A DNA stretch of 64,000 nt from Paragordius varius (GCA_964247055.1 OZ176057.1:2542001-2606000); one strand, 5' to 3'; counted from the stretch's first letter, positions 3,119 through 50,675 are shown. The notes: generated by a model from the letters alone, not told the origin. Numbers and translations: made by a program.

Positions 3119-6100
3119 TTATGTAAAATATAAATTTAAATAACTTTGAAAACTGGTAAAATAATTTTTGATTGGTGTATCCGATAAGATTTTCGATTTT
3201 TTTGCATGAACATGATATGGCAACACATCATCAGAATCAAAATTCCTTAGCATTTTCCCTTTATATGAAATTATACTCCGTTTTTTACCAACAATGTTAT
3301 TCGTTGATATCCTTTCAATTTCATCTTTCCTATTATTATATAAATTCAATTGTTTATCACTTTTAAGACTTGTATGAGAATGTAGTGTTGAGGTTAGGGT
3401 TGGTTTAATGCTAAATGTTTGACTGCGTACAATTAGGGTCGTAGGCTCATTATAGTAATTAGGTTGTGGTCTTATAGTTTTTTTAATATTATATGTTGAC
3501 AATTTTTTATTGGAACTCATGTCTATGCCATTGTATTTTGAGGCATTTATAGCTTTAAGCTCTTGATAATCATGTAAGTTGTAAAGTTTAACTGGGATCC
3601 AATCAGGCCATTCAGTACGGATTTTATGCTTGTCAGCGTTAATTTCAGTTTTAGAGTTGTCACCCCAAACCTTCTTATTTTGTTTAAGATTATGATTGAG
3701 GTTTTGCAATGCTAATCCCTTGAATTTCTTCGTTTGAGGCATTCTAGTAGTTTTCGTCGAAGCCATCTTATTGAAAGGGTACTCATCTATTTTGGGGGAC
3801 CTGAATGTTACATCTAAACCATTTATATGGTAATATGAATTTTGTTGACTTTTTTTAATAGTTCTTCCTTCCTTATTATTTTGTGGGTTATTAGAATATG
3901 TTTTGGTGTTTAAATTTGGATCAAAATACCATTTTTTAGGAGTATTTGATGTTGATGATAATATAGTGGCCGTTTGTTTTACAGTGTTTGTCGGTTTTTG
4001 TTCTCTAATGAATCTTATATTTTTAGTTTTCTCACGATACTGTTTATTTGTTAATGGTGTTAAAATCAAAGGTTTTTGCGTTTTTGGCTCATTATGGCTT
4101 AATTTCGTGGTTAATGAGGAATGTGAATTTCTAGTACTTAAGATATTTGGGTAAGTTATTGCGTTCGTTATATTAATAAACGACGTGGATTGATAATTAC
4201 GGGGTTTTTTGAATTGTGCCGGGTACATTTTTTGCATGTAATAATGTATCATTTCATTGGTTTTATCATCTATGATCCCATACTTACTATCGTAAGATAA
4301 ACGACGCCCTTTAGCACCACGTAAGGATTTTTTGCCGTTTTTTTCGCTTTTTAGCTTCCTTTCAGAAGATTCAAGAATATTATTATTATGATGATAGGAC
4401 AGTTTTCTTTTCTTTTCAACAATTCTATTCCGAGCATAGGGATGTGGATATGTGTCAAAACCTAAAGCAGCGGAAACTGAGTTTTTCCTTTTCTTAAAGT
4501 TTGACTGTGTGCTAACCATATTTTGAAGTTTTTGGCTTCGTTGATTTATTGAAACAATCTTTTTACTTTGTTTATCAACATCAGCATCAATAATGATATT
4601 AGAAGGATTATCATTTCTACCTTTGGTATAGGCATGTCGCGCTTCTAATGTCACCAAATAAAAGCCATATTTATCGGGAGTAGACAAAGGTGAAGACCTT
4701 GAAACTGATAATTTCTTGTTAGCTTCTGAAAGCAATTCATTATTTTTCTTATAAGGTTTTGCGTGGGTTGGAGATGAAAATAAAACTTTTGTACTGGTTA
4801 AAGTTGTTGAACTAGCTATAAGGGGATTGTTATGCACATCAAACCAGGAATAAGGACTTGAAGCATATATTTGATTCAAATTTTGCCCATATTTGCCCTT
4901 AGATAAATGATTGTTTTTTGTATGGTAGTAGGGATTCGTATATATGTTATCTAAATAAGCTGGGGATGAGGAGAAACTTTGGTCTACATCATCATTTTTG
5001 GTTCCAGAAGTAGGGATATTACCGCTTTTTCGATTTACCATTTGATTATAATTGTTGGTTGGTAGTAAATAGTTGAATTTTTTCTCTTGTTTGTGTGTAT
5101 GTTTTTTATGACTGGAAAATGAAGTTGGGGAATATGAGTACCTAGGAGCCCAGTATTGATGTTTATTGTTAGGATCACTGAAAATATGTCTTTGTTGGTC
5201 ATATATGTAATCAGAATTTTGATTCTGGGTAAGTTGCGTTTGATAAAAATTATTATTTTGATCATCATACAAGTAGTATGGATTTGAATGTTGCACCATT
5301 TTTCTCTTAGATGGTACGGTATATGTATTTCGATAAGTAACAGAATTGTGATGTGTAGATATGACAGGATTAGTCCTAAAATATATAAAATATGACACAC
5401 AAAATATTATATCATATAACCATTTGCACCTCAAATTCACCCTAAAAATAGATTATTTGTTGTAAATATAACTCATCATTAATATGAAAGACTTTATGGC
5501 ATAGTTTATTATTAGTGTATTATTAATTTTAAACCGAATTCCATTTTTTCAATATATAAACAATGGGTAATTTTTAATCTTAAAAATCACATAATTTTGT
5601 TAGGGTGAATGTATTGTTTGAGGGTTTATTTGAGGTGTAAATGGTCTATATATTGAATAAAAGAAAATTGGTTTTCGTTAATTCATAATTAACATACTAG
5701 CGTTTAAATAAATTTGTCGAAATTTAATCAGATATATGATTAATAATAATAATTTACCTAGAATTTTTATTATAATTATAATTATTATAATTAGTATTGG
5801 CGTTATTCGTTTGGTACATGTGATATTTGTTAAAAGCAGACGATGATGACATCATGGGTATATCTTGGTTACGGGAAGGGTAAACATTTTGATGTATATT
5901 AGCATTATGATTATTTTGACTACCATGAGCACCATCCTCGTCGGAATTCAAACCGCTTATCAAATTTTCCAATAACTCCTGTTCACTGCTTGGATCTGTT
6001 AAGCCAGGAATCGAGGAACGTCCATCCTCTTCCTCGGGATGTAAATCATTACTTTCCTGGTGTGCTACCACATCCCCTGATTGGGCCAAAAGTTTTTGCT

Positions 6101-7265
6101 CCAAAGCATCAGCTGATTCGTCGTCATGGTAACCGCCGTGACCATATGCTCGCAACAAAAATTCTCCTTTGCAACCCTGTCAAATATATTTTACACTGTT
6201 ACAAGAGTAAAAAATGGCTTAATTTTTATTTTGAATCAGATGAATGGATATAAATTACGTGTTAAAGGGTAAATATCCCAATACATGATGACCTTTTATG
6301 AATTTATCAGCTCTTATTAATCTGCTTATTATGCATCTCTTTGATTAAAATAGATTGACAGTTTGATATTTTGCTGAAAACTAATGGCTATTAAACCATA
6401 ATAACACATAATATACAATATTTTTCAAATGCGTATAATTGTTGAAAGGGTCATAATGTAAGTAATGAGCACTAAAAAATTCTACAATCATATAAACAAG
6501 GGTAAATTATTAAAGTTCAAATAACTAACATTACCCGATTCCTGTAAACAGAAATCAACTTTAAAATATATTCACAACATCCATATATTTAATTAACCAC
6601 CTTTGAGACCCAAATATAATCCCAGCGGATGATACCATAACTGGCACCAAGTTTGCATTCATGATCATCCATTTCTCGGAGCAAAGAGATGTGATAGGGA
6701 TTTTTGTCTGAGATGGCGCATTTATGGAAGTCTCCTTCGCCAGAGCTATAACATGCAATTTTGCGGTGATACAAACTCTGGCCCAAACTAAATTCTATAT
6801 ATATATATATATATATGATTTACAATTCATCACCCTTGAACAATTCATGTTCCCCCTTGAACAATTCAAATTCACCCTAAAAATAAATTATGTGTTTTTG
6901 GGCTAAAACAACTCATCATTAAAAGGAAATATATTCTTGTGGCAGAGTATATTATTTTTTCGGTATTATATTAATTTTAAACGAAGTGTCATTTTTTAAA
7001 AATATTAAAAATATGGGTAATTATTAATCTGAAAAACACATAATTTATTTTAGGGTAAATGTTGAAATTGTTCAGGGGGGGATTTAAATTGTTCAAGGGC
7101 GAATATAAACTGTAAATGGTATTTATATATTGTTTTCTCAAAAAAAGTACAAAAATAAAAAAAGGGTATTAAATGACCTAATAAAAGGAAAAGGTGTATT
7201 ATACAAGTCAGGAATGGTAGTTTCAAAGAAAATTGTTTTTTTGATATCCCAAAGTATGATTCCAT
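3119..7265 (-). CDS. Secreted protein: signal peptide + DUF3011-like (ADEL-lectin-like) Cys domain + long Asn/Ser/Lys-rich low-complexity tail. Exons 7265-7178, 6794-6601, 6176-5758, 5375-(3119 or an earlier donor)
   Basis: All three introns are GT-AG and phase-compatible (1, 0, 2). Spliced N-terminus: MESYFGISKKQFSLKLPFLTCIIHLFLLLEFSLG|QSLYHRKIACYSSGEGDFHKCAIS...ECKLGASYGIIRWDYIWVSK^GCKGEFLLRAYG. The C..G.SYG...IWV.KGC.GEF motif is recalled as DUF3011. About 985 aa if it ends at the stop at 3119. The 3' end is unresolved. Confidence 0.7.
5420..5644. mobile_element. Foldback MITE family A copy (in an intron)
   Basis: CCATTT...AAATGG inverted ends with CAAATTCACCC subterminal units. Confidence 0.75.
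6818..7119. mobile_element. Foldback MITE family A copy (in an intron)
   Basis: Tandem TTGAACAATTCAAATTCACCC-like units on the left, reverse-complement units ending in TGTAAATGG|TA on the right. Confidence 0.75.
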
Positions 7266-10200
7266 GTTTGAAGAATGCTAGAATCTTGCAGTTTCCGATC
7301 CAAATTGGCCTAGAATCTTAAAGAGATTGCTTTTTATTTGGAATAATCATGTCGTACAATATAATTTTCACATTAATGGGCAAAATTTTATTGAATAAAA
7401 AAAGGAATATATCAATTATTCGACAATTGAGTGATATGGTTAAATGATATTAATAAAATATATATGTGAGAAAATATATGAATTAATTTATTTTATATAA
7501 AAATGTAAATATAAATTGTAAAAACTAAGGGATGAAATCATCAATGGGCGTGTTTTATATTTATTGAAATCATTTTTTAAAAAAATAAAATATAGTGACA
7601 AATTATAATTAAAATTATAATAAGTATTAAAATCAGCTGATTATTGGGCTCTACGAGAGTTTAGATTAAATCAAAAATATAATTTTTCAGGGAAAAATAT
7701 CACTTGTTTGTTATAATCATAAAATATTTATATATTTAAAAACCAATATTTAAAATTTTATTAAATTATTTTATATATAAATAAGCATAAGTATGTCAAG
7801 TTTAGTAGAATATAGCAAAAAAAAATTTTAAAAAGCAAAACAACTTACCTGTAAAAATGATAAAATTAAAAAGTTACAATGTATTTTGTGTTCTTTGTTT
7901 AAAACAAAAAAAACGCACACATATTTCACCATATAATTCTTGCTACACAATCTAATCTAATTAATTAATTTTAATATTATCAATAATTAAGTTTGATGTG
8001 TTGGAAAATTAAGTTATTAAAATATTAAATGTATAATAATTAATCTTTAATTACATTATAACAACACTTTCTAATGATTTTCCTTTTTTGACACTGTTCG
8101 ACTTTCCATTTTACATTATTTTTCATTATTTACAAAAAACATAACTTTTACTTACATTGTATAATTTTTAATATATAAAAAGTAAAAAATGAATAAGTAT
8201 TGACCTAAAAACTATTTAGGACAGCGTGAATAATGTTTAAAATGAAAATGGTATGCCTATTTTAAAAAAGTTCGATCCTTTTTTTAAATTTCAATAGCTC
8301 TGCTGCATACTAGGGTTGTGCAAAACCAATTAAAAAAAGGGATCAATTTTTATAATTACAAAAGTTTTTAAAAGGACTTCCGCACGAAATGAAATTAACA
8401 CAAAAAACTATGGATCTATGATAGGGCCCCAACAGTCTTTAGGTAAAATTGTGTAACTGAAACCAAAATCAGAATTAAATTGGGAACCATACATGTTAAC
8501 CATAGCTCTCTCTATAAGGCAAGTTTAGTTGACAAGAAGTTTATCAGCAATCAAAAATTTAGAAAGGAAAAATACGTAACGCTCTAAAAACGTAACTTAA
8601 TTTATTGGTAAATAGTAAAATAATCAATAGTTTGGTATAAATATTACAAAATTTAGACAAATAAACATTTTGATGACCAAATAAAGACTAAAAAAAACTA
8701 CCAATCCTATATTTAATTTTTTTATAAGATGGCGAAACTATAAATACCAAACCAAAACTTAACGACAAAGTATCCAGTTAAAAATATTCTGTTGAAGGGT
8801 GGCTAAATAACATTTGTAAATTATTTGTCGTTAAAAAAAATTAACCAACAACACTAAAAACTATAATCCCAATAAACGATTTGAGGCAAACCCATATTTT
8901 TATTTTAATATTTTTACCCTTTTAGAGACCTAAAAAGATCCTAAAATAAAAGATGTCAGCATCGAGCCAGATAGTTTGAATAAGCGAAAATATCATATTA
9001 AAATGTTTTTTGGGGAAATATACCTTGTTTAAAAAATCTTGTGCTTTTAAAAATTAAAATATAATTTAGTGGCTAACGAATTCTTTAAAACCAATTTGAA
9101 CCCGCGGTTGTTAATAATGATTTGTATTTGCTCTATATGCCTTAAAAGACAAAACTTAGCTATGGATTTTTTTTCTCAAAATATCAACCTAAGAAAGATT
9201 GCAAAGACCAAAAAAACGTAGTTACCCATTTAAGCCTAAATCTCAAAATAAATGTTAATTTCATAAAATCATCGTCACAAATTTACCACGAATTAAGTTT
9301 TATGTTTTATGGCTAAAAAATGGTATATATAGAAATAAGTTATGGAATAGAATACACATGCCCAGAATTCTACAATAAATGCATTATAAAACAGTTTTGT
9401 TTTTTAATTGGATTTGGTTGCATAATATCTTGTATATGTTAGAACAAATCCTAAAAAGTATATTTAAAAATTTATTAAATGGTTTTTTTGAAAGAAACTT
9501 GGGGGTAAAATACCGCAAAATTTATAAAAACCATTTTTAAATAAAGTGTTTAAGCCAATATGCCTATAAAAAAATTATATTTTGTATGATAATCTACTAT
9601 ACCGATATGGCACTAAAGAACCATATTAATTAAACTCTCTCAATAATTTTTAGGCACAAAGATAATAGCATCAATCCTCATTATACTTTTAATACATTTG
9701 ATTGCGGGAATTTGTGCGCTTTAAAAATTTTTTGGATATAAGCAATTTCATATTTATGTCTCTATCTTACAATATCTTAACATCAGTTATTTTTGATGAT
9801 TCTAATTCCATAAATTTAGCATGTTTTTTGTATTAATCCCTGGAATTTAAGTCAATATTTAACTTTGTTTGTTATAATTAAGACAGAGGAAAAAAGTCAA
9901 AATTGTTTATTTTTGTTTATTATTTAATGCTGCACGATGTTTGCTTTTTACCTTATCTTGGTTTTGGCCCGCATGATTTAAAGAAGTTATTTGGATAGCA
10001 CTGCGCTTTTTAAAAAATTTTCACAAAACAAGTGATCTTTTACTCAAACTCTGCTCATAAATTTTCAGCATGAGCGATTTTATAGAAAAATGTTAAATCT
10101 TTAAACGATATTTTACTGTTACCACTCTGCTAAACGTCATGGCACTTCAACAAATTTTTATAAAATAAAATTTTAAAACAATATATGCATTTTTTAAATA

Positions 10201-10938
10201 CTTTATCTTTGGCCATTGTCTATTTTATTATTTATAAGCAAACAAGATTTTTCCCTTTCTTTTGAAATTATCCCAAAGGGGGTTGGGGTGCAAAACTTTG
10301 CCACTTCGGACTGCGTTAACAATTATTGAGTGATGTTTAGCTTGTTAATAGTTTATTATCTATTTAAATTCTATTTGTGTGTTGAAGCTCTTAGCTTTTA
10401 CCGAAACAAATTAATAATATAATGTGAGCTAATTTTGTGATTCTCAATATGCATATACCACAATAGAATAACTTCTCAAATCATGATATAACCAAAGACA
10501 TCAGGATAATCCTGCATTTTTCTACCATTTCCATATAAACAGGATATTTTTTGCTTGTACTAACGCAGTGCTCACAAAAAATAACCTGATGAAACATATA
10601 TTCTGATAGGAAATTAGATTATTGTGGTGGATTTAAGAGGGATCTAATAAAGTTATACTTTTGCTGTGCTCCATATTGGAAAATGCCAAATCCGCATATT
10701 TTTTTTAATAATTTTGGTAAAAACCAGAGGCTTTATTTCAAAAAACACCAATATATATCATAAACTACATCTAAAAAGAAAAAACAATATTTCAAAAAAA
10801 TTTATTTTTTGGGCTACAAAAATCCTAAATTTTTTGCTCTCTAAAATGGAATATTTCTCTTAAAAAACGAAAAAATGCCGGTGAAGAATATTTAAAACTT
10901 CTATCGTGCAATATAAGCATTTTATCGTTTTATTTTAA

Positions 10939-11464
10939 CACTTGAAAAAATACATTCATTTCAGTCGTTCGATTCAAATTGGGATAGTTGGATACTTCAG
11001 TCCTGTTTCAAAAATACTTTGAATAATATGAAAGAAATCGGAACCATGGCATTTTGCACTAGTATAATATATAAACCTAAATATATAAAAAATTTTATTT
11101 AAAAATACATGATATTACTTATTTTGTTGTGAAACTCGAAGGTAAAAATTTACTCAACTTAACATGTGTGCATTGGCTAAATTGGAAAATAATACAAAAA
11201 AACACTTTTTCTATTTCTATCAATGTTAGATGTAATTTAAATAAAAATTATAACTTTACCTTGACAATTTGCAAAAAATTTGTAAAATATGGCGTAGTTG
11301 TTAGACATGATTTTTTTTCAAAACGAAATTTTATTTAGATATAGCCTATTTATATAATTTTTAATAGGATATAAGCATAAAATTAAATTGGTACCGTTTC
11401 TAGTTTTTTAAAATTAACTTAAATATAGTCTGGGGTATTTAGATACCCGAATTGAATAAAAGTG
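10939..11464. mobile_element. TTAA-flanked MITE family C (~530 bp, piggyBac-like)
   Basis: TTAA|CACTTG...AAGTG|TTAA with a subterminal ATTCAAATTGGGG / CCCAATTTGAAT inverted motif. Confidence 0.72.
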
Positions 11465-12049
11465 TTAAGAGAACTAGCCCATATTAAAATGACGAAAAAT
11501 TTTAGAACCTTCGGGCCCACATCTAAAAAATTAAATTTTTAGAATACTTTATTAGCTTTTATATGAAGTTGATTATGTTTTTTTATGATAGTTTTGGAAT
11601 AAAGCCTTTAGCTTACACCAAAAAATTTCTGTAATTAAATGTTAGCAACTATAATTTTATGTAAATACCTCTTTTAAATCACTTGTAATGATAAAAACCA
11701 AAAACATCAATTTTACTAGCAGAATATATAATTTAGAGCTTATTTTTTCACCACCGATTTTGAACGCACTGTATATACAGTGTATTTTTCATTTTATCAA
11801 AAATTTATTTTTTTTGTTAAATGGGTATAAATATTTAGTAAAGGATGGAAATAAGAGCTTAATGGTAACAATATCAAATTGAAAAATGTTTATGAATTAC
11901 CATCGAGTTTTTTTTCCATTCTTTACCAAATATTTATTATTTAACCAAAAAATAAATTTTTGAAATAAAGGATACATGGCTGTATATACAATGTCATACG
12001 GTATATAATAATTTTTAACACATGATTAATCTTTTTGCTTTAGAACAGC

Positions 12050-13708
12050 ATGCTAATAATTCAAATTATAAGAAAATTTTCAATTTTACCTTCGCAACAG
12101 TCTTTCCCCACTATTTACCCAATCTATGATTATTGTATTCATCATTTATTGGAGCCACGGATAAAATATAAGAAGTTGATGACTGATTATGACGCTATTT
12201 CATTAAGCGCAAAGTTACGCCATGAACACGGGATGCCAGAAAGCGCTCATTGTATTACGCCCCAAATTTTAGGAGAATATTTTAAACCTATTATCGCTCT
12301 TGAATATGAAGCCGCTGAAATGAAATATCGGAGGTTAAAAAATAAATTTAAATATATAACGTCACCTAATCAACATATTATAGACCAACATGCCGCTCTT
12401 CAACGATTAAAGACATCTAAAATGTCCCTAATAAATTGCGTTTTGCAATTTCCAAACACACTTATGCGGGATTTTGGCTGTGATTTATTATCTATCAAAG
12501 TTGTTAGTAATAATAATTTTCAAAGTTCTTCCAAAATTCTTAATTCACATATTTTACAAGCTACAAACTTAATAACTAATCTTGAATATGGTCACTCGGA
12601 ATACCAACAAATCTTATTGGAAGATGAAATTTACAATTATTTATGCAATCAAAAAATGGGAACTGACGAAACAAATATCACCCCAACCTCGAACCTACAT
12701 GTAATGACCCTACCCGATTGGGTCAAAATGCCAATAATTGAGGGATGTGGGCTGGCTAATTATAGTTCCGATGTTGCTAATAATCATTTGCTACCAGTTA
12801 CTGACAATCAAGATTTTTTAAAAACTGACACAGAAGGATGGAATGAAGCCAAAAAGCTATTCACCATCAATAAAAATACCCTCTGTTTAAATCCTAACCC
12901 GTTAAGTGTATATGCCGCATATTTTACTAAAATGTCAAGTCAAATAAATGATCCCGAAAATGGGGTTAATAAGGCACCAAAACTCAAATGGGTTGATCAA
13001 GGGTTTTTTACTGTAGCCAATTTATACCGTAATTATCACGTAGCTGAATTATACAGCGATTATAATACTCAAAATTATAGCCAGGATTTAAATCTCCTCC
13101 GTTTACATAAATATTTGAAAGAGAATGGTATTGAGATTGGTTCCGCTAGAATACCATATCAAACGAGGAGTGCCACCTTATTTGTCGCATGTCACAATTA
13201 CGAATCTTCACGAATAAGTTTTCAAAACTCAATTAACATCATTACGGGTCTTTATAAACACTTGGGTGTTTCATCGTCCGATTTTCAGCTTGTAGAAGCT
13301 CCCTTGGCTGAATATGAATTAGCAGACGCTTATAGAATAAATATTCAGGTAGGGGTATCGCTTCAGACAATTAAAATGGCTTTCATCGATAATGCAAGTA
13401 GATGGCCTCACGACCATAATTTAGACACGATGTTATCGGACAAAGACACAAAAATATATGTGAATCTCGGTTATCTGGCATATGTCGGTGATTATGTCAG
13501 CCAAAGATTAGCTATGCTAGGAAAATATTGCATTGATGAAGAGGACATTAATGACAAAAGCAACGCGCTTAATGCTCCTAATAAAATTAGCAAATCAAAT
13601 GTCGCAATTACACCTCAAAAGCATTTTTTCATCCATGGCATATATGGTGAAATATGTAATATACCCTTATTAACCAAAATTTTAAACGTTCGATCCAACA
13701 ATTTATAG
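12050..13708 (+). CDS. Slimp: SLIMP-like degenerate mitochondrial seryl-tRNA synthetase paralogue, intronless CDS, 552 aa
   Basis: Presequence-like N-terminus (MLIIQIIRKFS) followed by a coiled-coil region. Class II SerRS landmarks are recognisable but altered: LYRNYH (cf. LYRVHQ), LAYVGDYVSQRL (cf. ASNCTDYQSRRL), HGIYGEICNIPLL (cf. HTLNGTACAIPRL). Motif 2 FRxE and the motif 3 Arg are absent. Confidence 0.75.
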   Translation: MLIIQIIRKFSILPSQQSFPTIYPIYDYCIHHLLEPRIKYKKLMTDYDAISLSAKLRHEHGMPESAHCITPQILGEYFKPIIALEYEAAEMKYRRLKNKFKYITSPNQHIIDQHAALQRLKTSKMSLINCVLQFPNTLMRDFGCDLLSIKVVSNNNFQSSSKILNSHILQATNLITNLEYGHSEYQQILLEDEIYNYLCNQKMGTDETNITPTSNLHVMTLPDWVKMPIIEGCGLANYSSDVANNHLLPVTDNQDFLKTDTEGWNEAKKLFTINKNTLCLNPNPLSVYAAYFTKMSSQINDPENGVNKAPKLKWVDQGFFTVANLYRNYHVAELYSDYNTQNYSQDLNLLRLHKYLKENGIEIGSARIPYQTRSATLFVACHNYESSRISFQNSINIITGLYKHLGVSSSDFQLVEAPLAEYELADAYRINIQVGVSLQTIKMAFIDNASRWPHDHNLDTMLSDKDTKIYVNLGYLAYVGDYVSQRLAMLGKYCIDEEDINDKSNALNAPNKISKSNVAITPQKHFFIHGIYGEICNIPLLTKILNVRSNNL

Positions 13709-13802: not shown

Positions 13803-15307
13803 TTATGCAAAGTATGCATAAAATTCTTTGGCCAAATTAAGCGTCTTAAAGCGTAAGAGATATGTTGTTGGGCTTGGTTCACCGGCAATGACTATCATTA
13901 CACTATTCTTTCCTAAAATATATATTTATGTAAAATATTAAAACAAAATAATCAAATTTTCTAATACTTATAAATAAGCAAACAAAAAATAACCTTCGGT
14001 AAGGGTTACAGGTGTTTTCGCTTTAGCTACTATACTATTTAAGATGACAGTTCCAGAAGCATTTGCGGCCCGTATCAAAAGTTGGTATTTAGAGTCAACG
14101 GGCGTATTGATTATATTATCGTTTTCAGTGCTTTTTATGTAACAAAATCCAACTCCTATAAAAAGAAGATTAATATAATTAAGAGAAACAATAAATGTTT
14201 ATAAACCCGTATTTTAGAAAAAAATATTTATAAAATTTAACCATATTTTACGGATATTAATATAAAGTCGATTTCTCTTCCAATATTTAATGAATTTCTC
14301 TGGTTAAAACAAAATTTGAAACATTATATACCAAGTAAATAGGTTAAAAACCCCAAAAATATGGTTGTTAAAATATTTTTAGTTACCTATATCTTTAAAA
14401 GCGGATTGTTCCTTTCGGTAAAGTTTACATTTATTGACCCATAAACAATTTGATTCCTGGAATTGAGGTTCATCTGCATCATTGGTTGTCATGACAACCA
14501 TATTATCGCCCGCAGACGATTCCACTTCATCCTTTTCATCATTGTTCTCGTCAGAATTTGTAATCACAGGATTATTTTTGGGCGTTTGGGGTGTAAACGA
14601 AAATTGAAATTTTGATAAACTATTATCATTATTGTATGAACCAGCCTTCAAATTTGGTTTTGAATCTGTAGATATGGGTTTAAACGAAAATGTTTGTAAT
14701 GGAGTTGATATAGCAATCGAACATTGATTATTTAACAAATTTTGGGTATTTGTATTATCTTGCGAATGATGCGTTATATTAACATGTTTAGGAGAGGTAT
14801 GAAAACCATTTATACCTGATAAGGTAAATGGTTTAAATTCCAAAGATTTTGTTTTAGTTTCAATCTGTAAATCTAGTTTTAATTGATTATTTTGTTGGCT
14901 GTAATCATTAAATATGGGCGTAAGATCACATTGCGGATTAACATCCAAAACTTTATTTACCCAATTAACAAACATTTTGTTAAGATGTGAAAGTGAGGCA
15001 AGATAATAAATTTCAATGTCTTTTTGAGATTCAAAATATGTGTCCTTTACTAATTTACCATTAATATAAATGCGTTTGTTATCAGGTTCGGGTTTTATCT
15101 TACTAATAGGTGTGCTTTTATTTACAGGGGTGTTTGGGCCACTACTCAAACGCTTTGCTTTTATTATTTTCCGCTTTGATATGTCCTCCGTTGAATCATT
15201 AAAATTTTGTTCAATATCTAATGTTATCACATAATACCTTCCTCGGAACTAATTTCATCCCAATTATCTTTGGTTTTTTGAGTTAGCGCTCTACGTTTAG
15301 CTGACAT
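13803..15307 (-). CDS. NUP50: Nucleoporin Nup50, 390 aa. Exons 15307-15238, 15217-14387, 14155-13994, 13912-13803
   Basis: N-terminus MSAKRRALTQKTKDNWDE...KRKIIKAKR; conserved FVNWVNKVLDVNPQCDLTPIFNDY; C-terminal Ran-binding domain (KCKLYRK...DIG^GVGFCYIK...YQLLIRAANASGTVILN...G^KNSVMI...YLLRFKT). All introns are GT-AG and phase 1 (20, 231 and 81 nt). Confidence 0.93.
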
Positions 15308-18300
15308 ATCTAGCAAAATGTTTGCATATGATTTATATTCATCAGATAGCCATAAATTGATAAAAAATATTTCTGGGGGATTCTCTTTTGAGTTATTTGT
15401 CGAATATATATAATAATTTACATTTTATCCTAAAAATGACTCAAATACTACTTTATTAATAAACTCTAAGACAAATATTTAGACATGCAATTTGTACATG
15501 AAATAACATTTGGATACAACACATTCATTTTTAGTACTTTGATCCAAATTGGGCTAGTTAAATACCCCAGGCCTTAAAATTAAATTTTTTACAAAATATG
15601 GAAATACACCATGGTAAAATTTTGCACTTATATATCATAAATAAACCTAAATATAAAAAAAAATTATTCAAAAATATTTTATATTATTATAAGCTAAAAC
15701 CGAAAGTTAAAAATTTAGTCAACGTGATATGTGTGCAATGATAAAATTAAAAATAATACAAAATGAACCGCTTTCTCTATATCTATCAATGTTAAATGTA
15801 ATATAAATATAAAAATTAGCTTTAATTTTACCCTAAAAATTAAATGAAGACGACATTTTGCAAAATAAAATATAAATGGCATCGAAGTAGTTTGACATGG
15901 AACTTTTTTTAAAAAAAGATATTTTGGCATATTTTATAAATTTAATAGTATAGAATCATAAATTTAAGTTTGAACCGTTTCATTCAGTAGTTATTTTAAC
16001 TCAAATTTATTCAGGCGTATTTAAATAACCCCAATTTTAATCGGATTATTAATATATATTTGACCATTTTTCAGGTATTCTATAAGAAAAGTTGTTAAAC
16101 ACAATAAATTTTTAAAACATCATATAAAATGAAATTTATGCCATATAACAAGAACATCTTTCCCTTCTAAAAGTATTTTTTGTTTGAGGCTTATTTACGC
16201 GGTGTACCACAGGGTGATTTTATATTCTTATTTAAATGACATAGGTATTTAACCAAATTTATAATAAGATGCTTTATAACTTTTGCTCTTACTTCAAAAA
16301 CATTTTTAACACTTGATTCAAATTGGGGTATCTAAATACTCAGATAAAATTTGAGTCAGGACTTGTAAAAAACTACTGAAGGAAACGGTCTTAATTTAAA
16401 TTTATGCTTTTATCTTAATAAAAATTATATAAATATGCCAAAACATCTATATAAAATTTTGTTTTGAAAAAAAAGTTCCATGTCAAACTTTTTCGATGCC
16501 ATTTTTACTTTACCAAATTTTTGCAAAATATCGTCTTCATTTAATTTTTAGGGTAAAATTAAAGCTAATTTTTTATTTAAATTACATTTAACATTGATAG
16601 AAATAGAGAAAGCGGTTTATTTTGTATTATTTTTCAATTTTATCATTGACACATGTCACGATGACGAAATTTTTACCTTTCGGTTTGAGCTTAAAATATG
16701 TCAATATTTTTGAATAAAATTTTTATATATTTCGGTTTATTAATGTTATATAAGTGCAAAATTTTGCCATGGCTTCGATTCCTTCCATATTTATTAAAAT
16801 TTAGTTCTAAAGAGGCCTGGGGTATATAACTACCCCAATTTGAATCAAAGGACTAAAATGAATGTGTTGTATACAAATGTTAAAAATGTAAAATTATAAA
16901 TAATAATCCTTGTTAATTATTTATATGGATATGTATGAAATTGTATTTACTACAAATTATATTTTATATGACATTATAAATATTTATATGGATTATTTAT
17001 ATGATATTGTATCTAATATATATAGTATTCTAATTTACTTATTGTAAACTATCCTTGCTAAAATATATATATACACCTATACAATCACAAAGGAATCACT
17101 TATAAAATGAAATAAATTCTATTTTATTATATTAAATTTGTTCAATCTTATCACTTGGATACATATATATTTCTGTCTTCTAACATGGATCTTTTGAGAA
17201 CCCAAACCTGTTAAAATATGGAGCAAATAAAAACTATTGTAAAAAAATGCATATATTACATTAATGAAATACAAAGAAGTTGAGCATCAAAGTAAGTGTC
17301 ACATGTCATGTGTGCATTATCTAAATATAAAAAGAATGCAAATTAACCAATTTTTCTGCTTACAGCAATCTTAGACTTAAATGAAAATAACTTCAATTTT
17401 AGCGTTGAATCAAATGAATACTATTTTGAAAAAAATTGTGAAATAAAATGGCGTCGAACTAGTTTGATATGGAACCTTTTTCAAAAACCAAATTATTTGG
17501 ATATTTTGTCCTGTGCCTAAATTTAAATTAAAACCGTTTGTTTTAATAATTTTGAAAATATGAACTTAAGTTGGTCTGAGTGTCCCAGATCCCCCAATTT
17601 GAACAAAGTGTTAGACTTTTTTAGGGCCATTTTTTCTAAATTATTTGAATCGCTAATATACAGGCAAAATATATATTGTAATTAACACTTATGCCCTTTG
17701 GGGGTAGTATTATATCCCAGAGCAATTTGAAATTAAATATCTTAGTATTTAAGATGTTAAGCCGAATTAGAGTTTTAAGCGCAGTAAAATTGTGAAAAAA
17801 TCATCATATTAAACTTCTTTGACGCCATTTTTGTTTTTGAACTTTTTATTGCAAGTGCAAGAGGCAAATATTTACATATTATGGTTAGAAAATGTAAACA
17901 ATTAATTTTTGAAAGTTCTCAGGTTTTACCAGCAAAATTGATGCTTATTAATTTTAATATCTGGTTATGTTTCGGAGCTGTCAATATCAGACTCTACAAG
18001 TCACAAATAAATATAAAAGTTTGTCTAATACATAAAAACAATATTTGATAATTTTAATAAAAATAACTGTAAAAACACTAGTTTTCAACATTGATATGAG
18101 ATTTAAACCATCCCAATATGTCAGCGCGCACAAAAAAATGAATACGTCATGAGGTGTTAGATGAACAATGAAGTTCAGAAATCAGAATTATATTTTAACA
18201 GTTGAATTTTATAAAGTTATTGTTACCTGGTTTGAAATCATTTGATTTTAAACTATAGAAGTTAAGAAAGTGTAAAAATTATGAGCTTTACATAAGAAAT

Positions 18301-18459: not shown

Positions 18460-18955
18460 ATCGCAAAGGCAGTTATCAAATATAATAAGGTTTAATGACA
18501 TCAAACCAAAAACCAACCAAAGTTAGATTAATCAAGGCAACAGTTTTCCCCACATGAGGGGGGGGGAGCTGTACACTAAAAAAATATGAAAAACGACTAA
18601 TAAATTCTTTCGAATTTGGAGGAAACTTCTCCAAATATGAACAGGCAAAATTTCTACGCCACTATTTTAAATAAAATTAATCTGGAAATGTCACTTTTAG
18701 GCAGCCTAATACGGCAAAAACTATCCATTTAGGGCCACATAATGAGATCTAACTCACTTGAAAAGTCACTGATGCTGAAAGTGAGTGGTGCACGTAAAAG
18801 AGGGAGAAGACGAACTCGTTGGATGGATAACACCCTCAAAGAAATCAACCAATCATTATCCGAACTATAGGCTAGATCCGGTATTCGCATTGAATGGAGA
18901 AGTTATATTCTCAATGTTGCAGTTAGTCGGAATCGACCTTGGCAATAACAACACT
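18460..18955 (+). mobile_element. Decayed 3' fragment of an RTE-type LINE
   Basis: IRQKLSI*GHIMRSNSLEKSLMLKVSGARKRGRRRTRWMD parallels the 52677 ORF. It carries stops and frameshifts and ends in CAATAACAACAC. Confidence 0.8.
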
Positions 18956-21274
18956 ATATAATAAAGCTTGTTTCAAAAGTATGATTATCAATATATAAAA
19001 TTCAATTGGGTAAAAAGCCTTCATTTTACAGTTTTCAAAGATCTAAAGCAGGTTTGCTTATCATACTTTAGGTTGTGCCATCGTTTACGCTCTGATTTTT
19101 TCATTTGTGACTTATACAGTGTGCACAAAATGAGATGATATAAAAAGCACCTGATGAAATTCTGAAAGATTAAAGTGTAAGAATTCATTTGGTTTTATGC
19201 GTTATAGTTATATAGGACAAAAAACTTTTAATTTTTTTAATCCAAATTGAGATAACTGAACGTGATTAAACGAACGGCTGATATTTAAGTTGATAAATAT
19301 CAAAAATGGTAAATTTAATTAAAAAGATTATTAAAGTTAATTATTTATTTTCCATAAAAGACAATGTGACTTTTATAGTCACGATTTAAAAAAATAAAGA
19401 AAAAAAACGGCGGCGAAAGACATTTTTAAATTTTTTCATGTATCTTGCTCCTAAAATGATTTTAAATATCCTAATGGCAAAATTATTTTTTAAGATATTT
19501 AAATTTCAAAAGACCCTATGTAAAACTACCCCAAACGGTCAGCATATGCAAATAGCATAACTTAAACATAAAAAGCAACACAACATTTTGGCAAATTAAT
19601 ATTAGATGTGAGCTCCAAATATCGCAAATTTTTAAACCCGTATAAAACGGGCAAGTTTTCTTAAACTAAACGCGATGAAATCTTTAAATATGTGCTAAAT
19701 TTCGACATCAAGAAAAGTTAAATTGAGAAATTGCTACTTTGTTTAATGTTTATTTTTTACCATAATTTTATTAGAGAATACTTTGGGCGTTTGATGCATG
19801 CAAACGGTAAAAAAAGCTAAAATCCAGTTTTTTATGCAATTTATGTGCTGTAAAAAATTCGATATATTTCTATAAATAGATTTTTATAAAAATTTTCCCA
19901 ATTAGTAGGCCACCAACTTTTAAATTAAAATTTTGGGTAGATAGAAATGGTAAATTTACATCGAAAAGGTGTTTTTTAAAATATTAAAGCGTTTTTTCTA
20001 TTTAATCAAAACTCAAAATCGCAAAAACTGCGTTTCAATAAAATTTTAATAAAAATTAAATTTCAAAGAAATGTATTTTTTAAAATGTTTCTTTCTTTTT
20101 AGATGTCATAATCTACCATATATTAATTATTGTTTTCGTGCGACCTCAGCCATTCCAAAAATCTGAATTCGAACACTACATCTAAATTTTTAAAAATATT
20201 GTTTCGCCTTTAAAGTTTATGATCAATTTTTGATAAGCGTTTAACTTTCACAAAAAAATATTCGATTGCGCATAATTTGTACAAATTTTATTCAGTATAG
20301 ACTGATTTCCACAAAGTGTAATAATATATTTTAAATAATTCCTAAGACCCAAAACCAACATAACCTTGAGAATTCTGATATAATATTTATAAAAAAATAA
20401 ATTTCGCCAAGTTATTTTTATGTGCAGTGTGTATCCCAACTACAGATCCAAGAAATGATTTCGTAACTGTTTAGTCCGATCTCGGATAGAGTTATTACAC
20501 CATTTTAGCTAATTGTACAAAATAATGCGACTTTGCATTAATTCCAAAAAAAACAAAAGTGTTTTTATTCAATTATTTTAACACACTTTTTTTATATTTT
20601 AGTCGAGATTTTTGGCTTCTAAAATGGTGCTTAATGTTAATTTATCCCATTTGACATGATGCCACTACTATTTACATATCAAAACAACTTGAATCCATGA
20701 TATAGCCAAAAAATTAAAGGGCTGCAAAAAATATTTGATCTCGCCCCAAGGGCCATATACCATATAATACCGATAAAAAATAGCTGTGTTAAACATATGA
20801 TTCTTAATTATAATAATAAAAAGTGAAATTATACGGACAAAACTTAAAAATGTAGATACGAATATTTTTATTTAAAAAACAACCATACTTTTTTCTCCAT
20901 TTTTAAAGATATAACTCATTGTTTCCAATTACAAATGATAAAATTAATATGTATATTGGTTACACAATCAATTTTATAAAAACAATTGTAATTAAATAGC
21001 TTGCATAGAAAAAAACTAACGTTTGAAGAAGTATGGTTGACTGTTAGGTAAAAATATTTGTCTTTAAATTTTTACGTTTTGTCCGTATAGTTTCAGTTTT
21101 TACCGTATTACTTAAAATAGAGCTTCCAAATATTCAAAAAATATGGCGCCATAAAAAATCACTCATGCAGCGTGTAAATTGCGGTTTAACTACCACTGGC
21201 TTGTCACCGATTTTATGTTAAAATTTGTTTTAAATTTGATGTTTAAAAGGTAATAAAAAAATTTATTTATATAT

Positions 21275-24200
21275 TTAAGGATAAAGATATGAACGTATCC
21301 AGTTTCCATTTTCATCTTTGCGATATTCGAAAATTCCACGTTTCCATTGATCAGACGACTTTGTCAGCTGATTCTCAGCAGTTTTTTGATCAGCTGTTGT
21401 TTCATCTGGCTTGTTTGGAGTTGTTTGATAACATTCTTTGTTTAAAACGTCAGGGGTTCGATTTGTTTCTATTCCATAAAATAAATTATACGTTTGAAGG
21501 AATATAAAAGAATTAAACATTTTACTTACATAACTTTTGAATACATTTTAGTTATTTTTTGAAATGTATTATATTCAGTAAGAAGCACAATTATAGATCA
21601 TATATCTATTTTAAAAGGCTAAAGGAGTATATTTACATCTTATTTGCTATGTATGAGGTTCTCAATTAATTAAATTTTTAATTAGCACTGTATTTTTTTC
21701 TCCACAATTTTCAAAACGTAATTAAAAAAAACGAATAAGCTCATACATGGCTACACACTTGTAAATTAAATAACCTTTACACCATTTAAAATATAGTACA
21801 AGCCTATAATAGTGATCCTTACCATATATCCATGTCTAAATACATTTACAAAATGTTAATACTATACTATTTTAAGGGTTTATTTTATATATTTTTTTGT
21901 TCGATCCATATTTTTTAACAAATCGCAACAAATTAGTTTATTTACCCTTGAAAGCACCCTACTTAATTCCCCAATAATTATTCAAAACTATGGTTTATTT
22001 CATACTTGAAACCATTAAAAGTGTTCGATACTTTGCATACAACAGGAAAAAAGCAATCGTCATAGCTATTGTCAAAAAACCAAAAACCCACACAAATATA
22101 GTAATAATAAGAGTGTTTGAGACGCTGTTTAAATTCCCATTTTGCATTGAATGAACGTTGGAATTATCCATTGATGAGAGGAGCCCATTTTTAGTACTAA
22201 TCTCATTTTTGTAAGGTGCTGCTTTCCAAATTTTATAATTTAAATTTACATCCTTATCTAAACTGTCCCCTGCCTGTGGATTTTGGTGGGGAATTTCAAC
22301 TTTAGTGGTAATTATGTTAGCCTTGTCAAATGAATGTAATGGCCGTTTTTTGTCTAAAAAATGTATAACAATTTACGATCGTTAATTTATTATAGATTCG
22401 AGTTCATCAAATTAAAAAATTAAAAAACCTTTATAGTGGAGATTATCTCTCCTGCTAAAACCGTATGAAAAATTTCATGGCTAATTATCCGAATTTTAAT
22501 ATTACAGTAAAAATATAAATTATACGAACAAAACGTAAAAGTATAAAGACAAATATTTTTATTTAAAAGACATTCCATACTTTTTTAAACTTCATTTTTA
22601 AAAAAATAACTCATTGTTTCCAATTGTGCAAATTATAAAATTTATATGTATATTGTTGACACAATCATTTTTATATAAAACAATTGTAATTAAATAGCTT
22701 ATAAAGAAAAAACTAAAGTTTGAAAAAGTATGATTGTCTTTTGGAAAAAAATATTTGTCTTTATTTTTACGTTTTGTCGTATAATTTCATTTTTACTGTA
22801 AATTTGCTTTGATAAATAAATAATATTTTAATATTATTAAATATTTTGAATAAAAAAAATAATTTCACCAAAAACATGAATTTTAAGGACTTTTATTCAA
22901 TTAATTCAAAAAGGCGTCGTATTTAACGCGGGGTGGAACTTAAGGTGCTGGTAACTTATGAAAACACCTCAAATATAACCGGAAACGCAATTAATAAAAT
23001 AAATTAATTAAAATAAATCTGCCAGTTCTGTCTAAAAGCCTACATATGCAAAAATTATATACCCATTTCATTATGCTCAATCACATGGTATTGTTTGATA
23101 AGTTTTGGCCTTAAAATTGTCGTATACTCAGGCTCTCTTTGATTTGATGTCACATTTTCAAAATTTTGTGGCTTATTATCCTTATTAAAATTATGGTAAC
23201 AATAGGCATCCCATCTAACGCATGAATAGACACCCTGATATAAATAGCTTAGATTCTTGGAATTTTGTTCCATCGTTCCCAATTCAAATGTTGTAGTTAT
23301 TAGTGTTTCAGATAGTGCGCTTTCTTGCCAAAGGGCCTATTTTGATAGAAAAAAAATTTATTTTTTCATAGTGCGCCCACAAGTGAAAATGAAAAGATTA
23401 AACGTCAACACTAAAGGGCAATATTTTCTAATGGTAACCATATCATTTTTTTAAAAATTGGATTTATTTACAAGAAATATGAGGAATAAAGATGTAAATT
23501 GATCATGTATTGTTTATAATTTCAGAAATTTCAATCATTAGGGCAGGGGTGTCCAAGAAACGACCCGTAAAAAATTTCTGAAATTCATAATTTGTAAAAA
23601 TATAGTCAAAAATTTTTAGTGTTATTGATATTCTCAAACAATTTTCTGAATAAGCCAATTTAATAGACAAAGCACTACCCAAATTTGTTATAATATGTTT
23701 GCATTTTACAGTCTTATGTTTGATAACTAATAATAAAATATTTTACAAATGTCCAAATATATATTTTATGCCGCCCACCGAGTTTTGAGTCGATGTTAGA
23801 CACATCTAATTTAGGTTATGTTTTTGTTGATGTAAATAAAATTTTTAGTATAATTTTTAACATTTTGTCTTTACAAACTTTAAATGGCGTACGAAAACCT
23901 GTTGATATCCCCGTAAAAATCCTTGATGAGTTAAATAAGCTGCAGTGATGTTGGAATTTAGCTTGATAGCAACGGCTAATGGTATATTATTTTGTCTTTC
24001 ATTATTTTCGTTGTGAGCACCCCTAAGCCAATCATCAAAATCAATATCTGATGATAAAAAATCAAGGGAAAAGGGTAAAGTTTTGCCCAAATCTTTTGTA
24101 CCGCTATATGTTGACCAGGAATGTGGCTGGTTATTCAAGTTATTACCTTTATATATCGTATAAATTGAAATTATAATATGGACAAAATTTAAAAGCCAAA

Positions 24201-25318
24201 ACAAATATATTTTTTAATTTTTTGAATAACCTACAGTTTTTCATGGCAAAATAATGGAATAGAGATTTGGTTAAAAACCAAATTTAAATTATATATACCA
24301 TTTATACCTCCGATTTACCCTTGAACAATTCAAATCAATTTAACCCTAAATAAATTATATGTTTTTGGGCTAATATAACTAATTATTAATATAAATATTT
24401 TTTTATGGATTTTTATCTGTATTAAGTTGACAATGAAGTTATATTTTTTTAAAAAAATCTAAAAATATATGATGTGTAATTTTCAAAACATACAATTTAT
24501 TCAAGGGTGAAATGGAAATGTTCAAGGGTAAATTTGAGGTGCGAATGGTATCTAAAAAATGAGCAGACTTAAAAATTGGCTATATATAAAACAGATCTAT
24601 AATTTTTACATTTTATTGCATTATAACTTTAATTATTACAGAATACGTTTATAGTAGAGGTATATTTTGCTAAAATGTTATTAATTATTGCCAAATATAT
24701 TCTGGTCTAATAATAGAGTAAAAGTGAAAAAAATAACTAAAAGCCAATAATACTGCCCTTTGTTGTATATGTTCTTTGGCCATAATAATTACCAACTTTC
24801 TAGCAATGTATATTTTACTCATATACTGTATATTATAAAATATTGTAATCAAAGGCTGTTAGTAAAAATATTTTTATCAATCAAAAATGCTGGTAACTAA
24901 TTGGTTCTAATAAAATTTCTGTGCACATAAAATATACTCGAATAGTCATTCGAATCATGCGTAAAATTTTGCTCAGCACATTTCACAAACCCATAAATGC
25001 CTTCATTAGAATCTTGACACGTGGAAGGACAGTCACCATTTTCGCGAAAACAACTGGCTTAAATATTGTGTTAGATTAGTAAAATTCATTTTTACAATTA
25101 TAAGTATTTCATATATGAAAGCCTTTTCTATAGCCAAGTTTGGATTTGAAAAAAATTAATGGATTATTTAGTTTTACTTTTTAAAGGGCAGAATGCCTCA
25201 TCACTGGAATCGAAACAATCAATTTTGCTGTCACATAATTTTTCCACCGATAAACATTGCGTTGAATTGGTATTTAGGTTAGATGGACATGTAAAATATC
25301 CCACGTTATCTGGACACG
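21275..25318 (-). CDS. Single-pass receptor-like protein: LDLa module + Cys-rich segment + Ig-like motif + TM helix + short tail. Exons 25318-25178, 25057-24938, 24146-23899, 23336-23063, 22353-22006, 21468-21275; 5' end further upstream
   Basis: Exon 25318-25178 encodes CPDNVGYFTCPSN...CLSVEKLCDSKIDCFDSSDEAFC, a canonical LDL receptor class A module. YQGVYSCV resembles the Ig DxGxYxC motif. TM segment TLIITIFVWVFGFLTIAMTIAFFLLYAKYR. All junctions are GT-AG and phase-compatible (1,1,0,1,1). Confidence 0.78.
22505..22798. mobile_element. Tc1/mariner-type MITE family B (~290 bp)
   Basis: TA|CAGTAAAAAT...ATTTTTACTG|TA with long TIRs containing CGGACAAAACGTAAAA. Confidence 0.78.
24298..24548. 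mobile_element. Foldback MITE family A copy (in an intron)
   Basis: TA|CCATTT...GAATGG|TA with the same internal spacer (taaattatatgtttttgggctaatataact). Confidence 0.75.
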
Positions 25319-25747
25319 CTAAATTTTGAAAATTAAAATACGAAAAAAAATATTTAAAAGAGATCTTTTGTATTCAATAAATAATTGCACGCATAGAGAA
25401 TATTTTGGTATTTGTGAAAACTGGGAGTAGTCGATAAAGGAAAAATGAAATAAACCGTTAAGCTCTGTATGAAATATCATTTAATTTAAACAAATATTTA
25501 ATAATATTTACATTAAACCAAGAAACACATTGAACTTTAAATTATATATATATATATATTTCAGTTTTATATAATATTTGAAAAAAGGGACAATAAAATG
25601 ATCAACATATGTGGATTATTTCGAAACATTATTTAATAGCTATGATCTCATAGGAATTATAATACGGTGCATTCATACATTGATTGTTTACTTGAGGGAA
25701 AAATAGATTTAAAAAAATATTTATACGTATGATAGAAACTCCTTACT

Positions 25748-28401: not shown

Positions 28402-29218
28402 CTATAAGATAATTTGTTAAAAGTTTTGATCAATATTTGATTTTAATTAGTTTTTTAAGGGATTAATTAAGGAGATTTCAAATACAAATTTTAGCTTGTG
28501 CGCGTAAGATAAAATAGGCCTCTTTTTATGTTAAATATGAAATAGAATACAGTCAAATTCGATACTTTAATTTTTAATGTTTTTAAAAAAAGTATGTTAA
28601 ATTAGTCAACCACAGAAATCACCTCAACTTTTTGTAATTTTACAGCTATAATAAATATTTGAGCAGGGAACTTCTTATAAAAACCCCTATTGTGTAAAAA
28701 AAGACATGGCTCTTTTTTAAAATATGCAAAAAATTAATTTTATTTGATGATGTTTTAATTAATGTGTATTATGATTAATAATATATAATAATACAAATAT
28801 TTGCAAAAACTCATAAGATTATTAAGCTTATTTTGTGGTTTCCCTACAACCTAAATTATGGGCTAAAAATTAAACTTTAGATAGGAAAAGAACAAGATTA
28901 TCATCATCAATTAATTTTTATGCGCTTTTAATTAAAAAAATGTATTATCAGAGGCAGGATTCAATTAACATAATCTGCATATGTTTAAGGATTTTAAGAT
29001 TAACGGATTAAAACTTATATATGCGGAGTATAGAGCGCGTTAAAAAGATATGAAGAACATTCAAAAACAATAATTTTGGATTTTAGGAACTAGTTTTAAG
29101 TAATCTGATAAATATTATGATTATAGTTTGCCAAATAATTTATAGCGATGATGTTGTTTATAAAAATTTGTAATGAATTTATTTTGTAATATTCCTAATA
29201 TCATGGACTGAATACTTA

Positions 29219-29490
29219 CAGTAAAAATTGAAATTATACGGACAAAACGTTATGATATATAGATAAATATTTTCTAAAAGACAAGCATACTTTTATGAAC
29301 CTTGATTTTTTTTATATAAGCTATTTAGTTATATTTGTAAAATATAGAATTGATTGTGTTAATAATTTATATCGATTTCACACGTTGTCATTTAAAACAA
29401 TGAGTTATATCGAAATAAGTCAAGATCAAAAATGGTTGTATTTTAGAAAAATTTATTTGTCTTTACGTTTTGTCCGAATAGTTTTTACTG
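29219..29490. mobile_element. MITE family B copy. Others at ~20815-21110, 31248-31525, ~32246-32536, ~35545-35884 and 40813-41112
   Basis: TA|CAGTAAAAATTGAAATTATACGGACAAAACG...CGTTTTGTCCG...TTTTTACTG|TA. Confidence 0.78.
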
Positions 29491-29662
29491 TAATATAAAT
29501 ATCCTGAATAAAATCAGTTAATTACTTTAAATAAACAATATATAATATAATCCAGTAATTTATTCATATGCGAGACTACAATGTAAAAGTTAAGATATAT
29601 ATATATATATATATATAAAAAGTAGATATTTTGCGGAGCTTTTATTATGCCCAAAGAATTAT

Positions 29663-32600: not shown

Positions 32601-32702
32601 AGCTAATATAATTTTAAAAATATAGTCATTATTACATAAAATCTAAAAGTATATGTCATTAGAAATAAAAAAAAACACTGTATTCCCAAAATCCTATCAA
32701 AT

Positions 32703-50234: not shown

Positions 50235-50675
50235 TCAAATTTTGTCTTTTATATTAAATGAAACTCCACATGAACACCCACTTTGTGCATTTGGATTATT
50301 TACAATGCGGAAAGCAGATCGAATTAACTCATCTTGATAATCCAAAGTTGAATTTTCTAAATACTGAAGCGAAAGTTCGTCTATTACAACTTTTGCACCT
50401 TGTTTTGTTATGACTCTAAAAATAAAAGTATATTGATAACATAAAATACTTGTCATCGGAATTAACGGAGGAATCAAGTTCAAATTTGTATTGGAAACCT
50501 GAGCAACCCCCACCATCAACAATGATGCGCAAAAATTTGCCCTGTTCTAATTCTAAAATTTTCTAATCTATAAACAAATTATAACTTTAATTGCGGTGTC
50601 TGATATATTGATGGTTGAAAGTTTGTTAACATAAGTTTTAACCAAATGGAATATAGAATTTTTGGAGAATATCAT
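50235..50675 (-). CDS. ISCA2: Iron-sulfur cluster assembly protein ISCA2, 127 aa. Exons 50675-50586, 50562-50450, 50415-50235
   Basis: Spliced product: INISDTAIK^[27 protein letters not shown]...DD^[17 protein letters not shown]...[25 protein letters not shown]. Contains the HesB-family GGGCSG and CSCG motifs; NNPxAQxGCSCG is ISCA2-like. Introns are 23 and 34 nt. Confidence 0.93.

Follow-up and report, generated by a model that had tools for sequence, protein, structure and literature searches.

A probable 20-nucleotide GT-AG intron near the start of a Nup50 gene, most likely from a hairworm

Introns shorter than 30 nucleotides (nt) were long thought impossible for animal spliceosomes. The Nup50 gene in the 64,000-nt DNA stretch OZ176057.1:2542001-2606000 (the window; positions are counted from its first letter) raises the question of whether a segment of only 20 nt within its first codons is such an intron. 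A sequence-only reading had placed a 20-nt GT-AG intron at 15218-15237, and all its coordinates hold. From gene structure and homology, we consider it highly likely that 15237-15218 is a genuine GT-AG intron of the U2-type spliceosome, interrupting the first Nup50 codons. Its source would be a fast-evolving, AT-rich and repeat-rich animal, most likely a hairworm or a close ally.

On the minus strand, the complete spliced model comprises four exons encoding a Nup50 protein of 390 amino acids (aa). Exon 1 (15238..15307) starts with an ATG at 15307-15305 and contains 23 codons (MSAKRRALTQKTKDNWDEISSEE) followed by one G, leaving phase 1. Its translation is MSAKRR...NWDEISSEE. The candidate intron (15218..15237; GTATTATGTGATAACATTAG, phase 1) runs from GTATTA to TTAG at 15237-15218, with canonical GT and AG both present. 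As had been claimed, translation that continues past exon 1 reads G-I-M and then meets a TGA, at 15229-15227 inside the candidate intron. The remainder of Nup50 lies in a second frame, which is free of stops from 15248 down to 14382 and encodes (D)IEQNFNDSTEDISKRKIIKAKR... from 15217. Excision of 15237-15218 joins the G to AT, creating an Asp codon and fusing the two frames as the phase-1 proposal held. The mRNA junction in this model is ...GAGGAAG|ATATTGAAC....

The rest of the gene is sequentially composed of exon 2 (14387..15217), intron 2 (14156..14386), exon 3 (13994..14155), intron 3 (13913..13993), and exon 4 (13803..13912), which ends with the stop codon TAA at 13805-13803. Exon 2 carries the KRKIIKAKR importin-alpha-binding segment and the conserved LNxxFVNWV...NP.CDLTPIFNDY block, as well as repeats of the FG type; the Ran-binding domain also begins here. 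Intron 2 is 231 nt long (GTAACT...TATAG, phase 1), and its junction FKDIG|VGFCY brings the alignment of the Ran-binding domain back into register. Exon 3 encodes the core of this domain and matches the Gordionus Nup50 locus, L008, in tblastn with an E-value of 1e-14. Intron 3 is 81 nt long (GTTATT...TTTTAG, phase 1). One copy of a dispersed, roughly 550-nt element comes to within about 200 nt of the Nup50 start codon on its upstream side.

The family profile spans the 20-nt junction. Pfam sets the gathering score of the NUP50 family (PF08911) at 22.5. Taken separately, exon 1 covers profile positions 1-16 (17.3 bits) and the start of exon 2 covers positions 32-60 (11.8 bits). When the exons are joined by the 20-nt splice, a single stretch covers positions 1-60 with 37.2 bits (E-value 4.4e-9). 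Thus, the NUP50 domain exceeds its gathering score with the 20-nt splice, whereas neither piece alone does.

The spliced model aligns over its full length with Nup50 orthologues. The common features include an N terminus with KRR...NWD, an acidic run and KR.IKKAKRR, the LN...W....NP.CDLTP.F.DY block, FG repeats, and a C-terminal Ran-binding domain. The repeats in the spliced product include FSFKP and FQFSFTP. The entire Ran-binding domain aligns well with the orthologues, and a 77-aa piece across intron 2 matches positions 10-69 of 122 of the Ran_BP1 profile with 17.2 bits, below the gathering score of 23.2. An exhaustive phmmer search with exon 2 returned only 20 weak matches (best E-value 2e-6), driven by the LN..F.NWV....NP.CDLTPIFNDY block; several are annotated Nup50 proteins. 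A k-mer protein search with exon 2 gave no match, and a phmmer search of the PDB with the two N-terminal pieces matched no Nup50 chain.

The nearest homologue is the Nup50 of the hairworm Gordionus, CAK9291358.1, which clusters with XP_065324729.1, a 'nuclear pore complex protein Nup50-like' of Gordionus sp. m RMFG-2023. In a local re-scoring of the fetched proteins, the score of CAK9291358.1 rises from 36.6 bits with the exon 2 query to 129.5 bits with the full spliced query, and the other proteins reach at most 81. The window and Gordionus proteins are 41% identical over 359 aligned columns. A small tree pairs them as sisters (support 100/100), with both branches long and compositionally odd.

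Gordionus Nup50 has an intron at the same place. Exon 1 of the window is 65% identical to Gordionus exon 1 in tblastn. The Gordionus protein maps exactly onto L008, where exon 1 consists of 24 codons plus 1 nt, again leaving phase 1. Intron 1 of Gordionus interrupts an Asp codon after its G (G|AT; ...NWDQDPTSNS|D|NDDTVNVQNKDLISKRKILVAKRR), and a pairwise alignment places it in the same column, phase, and split codon as the junction in the window, ...NWDEISSEE|D|IEQNFNDSTEDISKRKIIKAKR. Two independent Gordionus annotations concur on this junction. The flanks are also alike, with MSAKR...NWD upstream and the conserved ISKRKI(I/L).AKR directly downstream, and the acceptor must therefore lie upstream of that peptide. 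The introns themselves differ: Gordionus intron 1 spans 189 nt, its donor being strong (GTGAGT) and its acceptor TTCAG, whereas the window has 20 nt with GTATTA and TTAG.

The last Nup50 intron is also common to both genes (...TPVTL(S/TE)|GKNS..., phase 1) and measures 4777 nt in Gordionus versus 81 nt in the window. Intron 2 of the window has no counterpart at its position in Gordionus. Comparison of the loci outside the Nup50 exons detects no similarity between the window and L008. In three echinoderm-like orthologues the first intron lies 1-2 codons away in phase 0, and a fourth orthologue has none there; as support for the window intron, these neighbouring positions may be suggestive only. 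Within the Gordionus gene, a 42-nt in-frame intron at L008:4644-4685 is spliced in CAK9291358.1 and retained in XP_065324729.1.

To compare alternatives at the window junction, every frame-keeping GT/GC-AG and AT-AC pair was enumerated and the serious rivals were scored. Among all models that fuse the frames, the 20-nt phase-1 GT-AG intron performs best. The NUP50 profile gives 37.2 bits for the 20-nt intron, 32.3 for a 32-nt intron, 27.5 for retention with an X at a hypothetical indel, and 17.8 for an 80-nt intron. A hidden Markov model built from the N termini of the four orthologues only produces the same ranking, with 30.4, 26.5, 20.5, and 17.7 bits. In phmmer against Gordionus Nup50, the scores are 129.5, 125.8, 121.5, and 110.5 bits, and 106.3 bits without exon 1. 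The spacing from NWD points the same way. The earlier count of 24 residues to xKAKR corresponds to 25 residues to KAKR, and this spacing is 25-27 in the four orthologues.

The 32-nt model is the rival that survives best. It takes the same acceptor with a donor upstream at 15249 (GTTCCG), giving the protein ...NWDEI-N-IEQNF and the mRNA junction ...GAAATTA|ATATTG. It keeps the frame and phase 1, stays over the Pfam threshold, and could occur as a minor alternative 5' splice site. However, it scores 4-5 bits lower in three of the three scorings and reduces the NWD-KAKR spacing to 21. The GTTCCG donor is unlike the four other donors fixed in the window (GTAACT, GTTATT, GTTATA, and GTATTT), and the split codon is displaced from the Asp that is common to Gordionus. 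We regard this model as improbable.

Alternatively, the two frames may have been split by an assembly indel or by a genuine frameshift in a pseudogene, with the 20 nt being coding or dead sequence. Frame-fusing GT..AG pairs occur by chance at an appreciable rate, and some related genomes were built from error-prone long reads, according to the methods of the Gordionus paper. Yet retention costs bits in both comparisons (27.5 versus 37.2 for Pfam and 121.5 versus 129.5 for Gordionus Nup50). It also puts a hydrophobic GI.VITL into the acidic linker and stretches the NWD-KAKR spacing to about 32. The critical 25-nt interval lacks any run longer than 2. The five longest stop-free stretches of the window (11 kilobases, kb) hold 29 homopolymer runs of at least 6, none of them frameshifted, and the assembly looks accurate. 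The break also coincides exactly with the intron site of the relative. A pseudogene is unlikely because the remaining coding exons are intact and conserved. An indel or frameshift is accordingly given quite a low probability.

A further model joins exon 1 to an acceptor at 15158, making an ordinary 80-nt intron and leaving the intervening open frame fortuitous. The size is normal here, as intron 3 has 81 nt and Gordionus also possesses an 81-nt intron, and the frame is kept. However, the splice removes DIEQNFNDSTEDISKRKIIK, including the ISKRKI motif conserved in Gordionus and other orthologues, and the scores fall to 17.8 bits for Pfam, under the threshold, and 110.5 bits for Gordionus. Since the two loci share no similarity outside the Nup50 exons, ISKRKI..AKR must be coding, which rules this very improbable model out. 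Retention of the 20 nt with a programmed frameshift, or a downstream Nup50 start without exon 1, is barely credible. On direct reading, the 25-nt interval shows no evident stimulatory structure and no slippery site. In the frame of exon 2, no ATG occurs until about 90 codons in, and a start there would lose the whole importin-alpha-binding domain. Exon 1 matches the very start of both the family profile and Gordionus Nup50.

The preferred 20-nt intron has company in the window. An ISCA2-like iron-sulphur assembly gene (50238-50675, minus strand, possible start codon at 50675) requires two further very short GT-AG introns. The first is 23 nt long (50563..50585, phase 0) and follows ...INISDTAIK. 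Across it, the spliced 69-aa piece matches the Pfam family Fe-S_biosyn in a single stretch with 46.3 bits. The nine residues encoded by the upstream exon add 9.9 bits, moving the start of the match from profile position 19 to position 3. The second is 34 nt long (50416..50449, phase 2) and follows ...NSDD(K); its junction aligns without gaps to the PDB chain 2apn_A (E-value 3.6e-13). Three of the five introns with fixed ends in the window are thus 20-34 nt long, and these gene models suggest that very short introns form a class in the genome.

Longer introns occur nearby. An OXA1/60KD_IMP-like mitochondrial insertase gene (32065-38724, minus strand) extends across about 7 kb, with exons near 38422-38724, 37863-38000, 35281-35445, and 32065-32241. 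Its introns range from several hundred nt to a few kb, with approximate boundaries, unlike the introns of 20-34 nt. The exon at 37863-38000 scores 22.4 bits with Pfam, below the cut-off of 35, and the remaining exons were recognized by eye. Elsewhere, a 23-nt GT..AG segment (25341-25319) lies directly upstream of an isolated exon described below, and its upstream flank is not coding-like.

Several points weigh against the 20-nt intron. The 32-nt alternative trails by just 4-5 bits. Verified ultra-short introns number only three in 64 kb. The shortest Gordionus intron seen in Nup50 is 42 nt, which lends no support to ultra-short introns as a general hairworm feature. In this AT-rich window, GT..AG pairs of 15-40 nt join open frames no more often than control dinucleotide pairs do, with or without a codon-usage filter; this frame-only scan compared GT..AG pairs of 15-150 nt with six to eight control pairs, and 64 kb gives it no power. 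Finally, the putative branch point would lie only about 13 nt from the 5' splice site, far under what well-studied animal spliceosomes accept. The case for the 20-nt intron stands above chance because of the homology on both flanks and the homologous intron in a relative, not because of the frames alone.

How the 20 nt would be spliced can be outlined as follows. The pre-mRNA would be cut after AAG|GUAUUA and before UUAG|AU. The candidate intron contains UGAUAAC at 15229-15223, which places adenosines 6-7 nt upstream of the intron 3' end, and one of these would probably serve as the branch point; three introns are too few to derive a branch-site consensus. Joining of G to AU would create the Asp codon, and the ribosome would enter the frame of the remaining 390-aa protein. 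An unspliced mRNA would yield a 26-residue peptide ending at the UGA inside the intron, and splicing would therefore be obligatory for Nup50 expression. The 20-nt intron is probably a shrunken homologue of an ordinary ancestral first intron, which measures 189 nt in Gordionus, and the genome would harbour the class of 20-34 nt alongside longer introns, from 80 nt up to several kb. The sequence anatomy, the homology of both flanks, the superior fit of the 20-nt model, and the positional homology of the intron are observed directly, whereas the excision of these bases during mRNA maturation, the choice of branch point, and the assignment to an organism are inferred.

A horsehair worm (Nematomorpha), or an animal closely allied to that group, is the most likely source of the window, a placement suggested by one gene (Nup50), its intron positions, and base composition. 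The G+C content (GC) of the window is 26.8% overall, 34% in coding and 25% in non-coding sequence. The Gordionus locus L008 has 26.1% GC, and the published Gordionus genome has 26.9% GC and 64% repeats. The window is likewise rich in dispersed repeats. Two other affinities were considered. A myxobolid myxozoan origin, for which GC and the mixed intron sizes fit Thelohanellus kitauei, was dropped when the full spliced Nup50 matched Gordionus. A dicyemid origin is disfavoured by GC and the long introns. Metagenomes scanned for relatives, or for the junction in spliced or unspliced form, gave no matches, and no collection searched contained a protein of this species.

Two isolated exons on the minus strand support an animal origin. 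One encodes a low-density lipoprotein (LDL)-receptor class A domain (25167-25373, 27.9 bits). The other resembles an Ig I-set domain (44151-44639; 21.5 bits, just under the threshold) and is followed by a hydrophobic segment.

Three long open reading frames (ORFs) in the window are orphans. A stop-free stretch on the minus strand (58797-63998) spans at least 1701 codons with 32-36% GC and runs past the window end. A Y-R-N-x-[YH]-C-[SA]-L-C-N motif recurs in it, and several hydrophobic segments are predicted; this 1701-aa ORF matched no Pfam family, and a k-mer search found no homologue. The other two orphans are a 773-aa ORF (3122-5440, minus strand) and a 552-aa ORF (12050-13705, plus strand), and an exact look-up of the latter returned no record. 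Rfam and tRNA scans of the window found nothing.

Mobile and repeated sequences are abundant. A reverse-transcriptase ORF of the RTE/BovB type, a long interspersed element, lies at 52605-53564 (plus strand). Its best matches, 40-44% identical, are BovB-like sequences of Anolis, cattle, and tick, and a k-mer protein search returned only distant RTE/BovB-type elements. A second, C-terminal reverse-transcriptase fragment of the same kind is located at 18733-18867 (plus strand). BovB elements are known to spread horizontally via parasites, and one in a parasite genome may merit attention. The dispersed element of about 550 nt is present in at least five copies that are 70-84% identical and occur in both orientations (10921-11468, 15504-16042, 16305-16900, 39645-40183, and 51725-52269). 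A repeat family of about 300 nt has at least eight copies, for example at 20765-21107, 22456-22800, 29211-29493, and 40815-41113. Just past the 3' end of the ISCA2-like gene, an inverted 550-nt pair (47241-47790 and 49504-50052) is 94.7% identical and separated by about 1.7 kb; the pair could represent the arms of a recent DNA transposon or a foldback element. Tandem arrays of a 21-22-nt unit (consensus approximately GAATTGTTCAAGRGTAAATTW) occupy 34942-35224 and 43689-43787, and similar arrays occur near 6700-7300, 33765-33935, and 37411-37596. These arrays translate as FKFTLEQ repeats and often lie within the dispersed repeats.

The ultra-short intron is very probably real. Its kind is already known; this instance is new, and the lineage is possibly new. 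If the 20 nt are spliced and the source is a hairworm, an ecdysozoan lineage would be added. If introns of 20-34 nt are in addition a regular class there, they could mark a third independent animal origin of sub-30-nt introns, the first in Ecdysozoa and again in a parasite; this extension is tentative. Were it true, shrinkage would be traceable intron by intron, with the same Nup50 intron being 189 nt long in Gordionus. Because kb-sized introns are kept in a repeat-rich genome, genome compaction would then not be the driver. The introns of 20 and 189 nt, if the former is spliced, would form a matched pair for probing the minimal layout of 5' splice site, branch point, and 3' splice site, as well as altered spliceosome components. 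Default minimum intron sizes in aligners and gene predictors would break such genes and inflate apparent 'gene loss' in these parasites.

Among animals, a 20-nt intron is rare rather than unprecedented; if spliced, the one in Nup50 would rank with the shortest on record for the group. The sequence-only reading had put 20 nt far under the animal minimum, which is true for most animals but not for myxobolid myxozoans and dicyemids, where 20-27 nt is the norm (PMC13644364, PMC4986447, PMC6543705). Most introns of T. kitauei are 20-25 base pairs (bp) long (PMC4986447), and the medians of myxobolid introns are 22-27 bp (PMC13644364). Introns below 30 nt are likewise typical of dicyemids (median 27 bp; PMC6543705). 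When 51 animal genomes were surveyed in 2026, such introns were confined to two parasitic lineages, although more lineages were predicted to have them; the main text of that survey does not mention Nematomorpha (PMC13644364). The literature searched, with partial coverage, yielded no statement on hairworm intron sizes.

Myxobolids offer several parallels. The introns of T. kitauei, Myxobolus rasmusseni, and Henneguya salminicola are also of the GT-AG type, with modes of 20-27 nt and a minimal GTA-type donor (PMC13644364). The 20-27-nt introns of myxobolids and Dicyema share a donor reduced to GTA and a short A-run near the AG, the presumed branch point, and the branch-interaction region of U2 is conserved in both (PMC13644364); the proposed splice signals of the window intron agree with this pattern. 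In myxobolids tiny and long introns coexist, as in the window (T. kitauei mean, 240 bp; PMC4986447), and these are likewise AT-rich, fast-evolving parasite genomes. However, two differences are apparent. First, the Nup50 of the window groups with a hairworm (Ecdysozoa) and not with cnidarians, and no myxozoan protein appeared in any search. Second, tiny introns are the majority in myxobolids, whereas here they are three of five fixed introns and neighbouring genes have kb-sized ones.

Dicyema resembles the window in its median of about 26-27 nt, with two thirds of introns below 30 nt, and in intron positions conserved with other animals (PMC6543705, PMC6736024). Dicyema japonicum differs in having 36.7% GC and nearly uniformly short introns (mean 38 bp), as compared with 26.8% GC and many long introns in the window, and nothing ties the window to dicyemids.

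Beyond animals, the unrelated ciliates and chlorarachniophyte nucleomorphs have introns in the same length range, with canonical GT-AG ends and likewise too little room for a textbook U1 site, branch point, and polypyrimidine tract. Tiny introns predominate almost completely in these lineages, whereas the window mixes tiny and long introns within one gene. Chlorarachniophyte nucleomorph introns measure 18-21 nt. Those of Stentor are 15-16 nt long (PMC13644364), and those of Paramecium about 25 nt (PMC8997360). Human ultra-short introns (about 43-65 nt), which depend on SPF45/RBM17, are alike in their truncated polypyrimidine tract and modified 3' splice-site recognition (bioRxiv 10.1101/784868), but they are over twice as long as 20 nt. 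The closest homologue of the window Nup50 and the intron positions common to both genes point to Nematomorpha, outside the lineages documented for this class of introns, Myxobolidae and Dicyemida.
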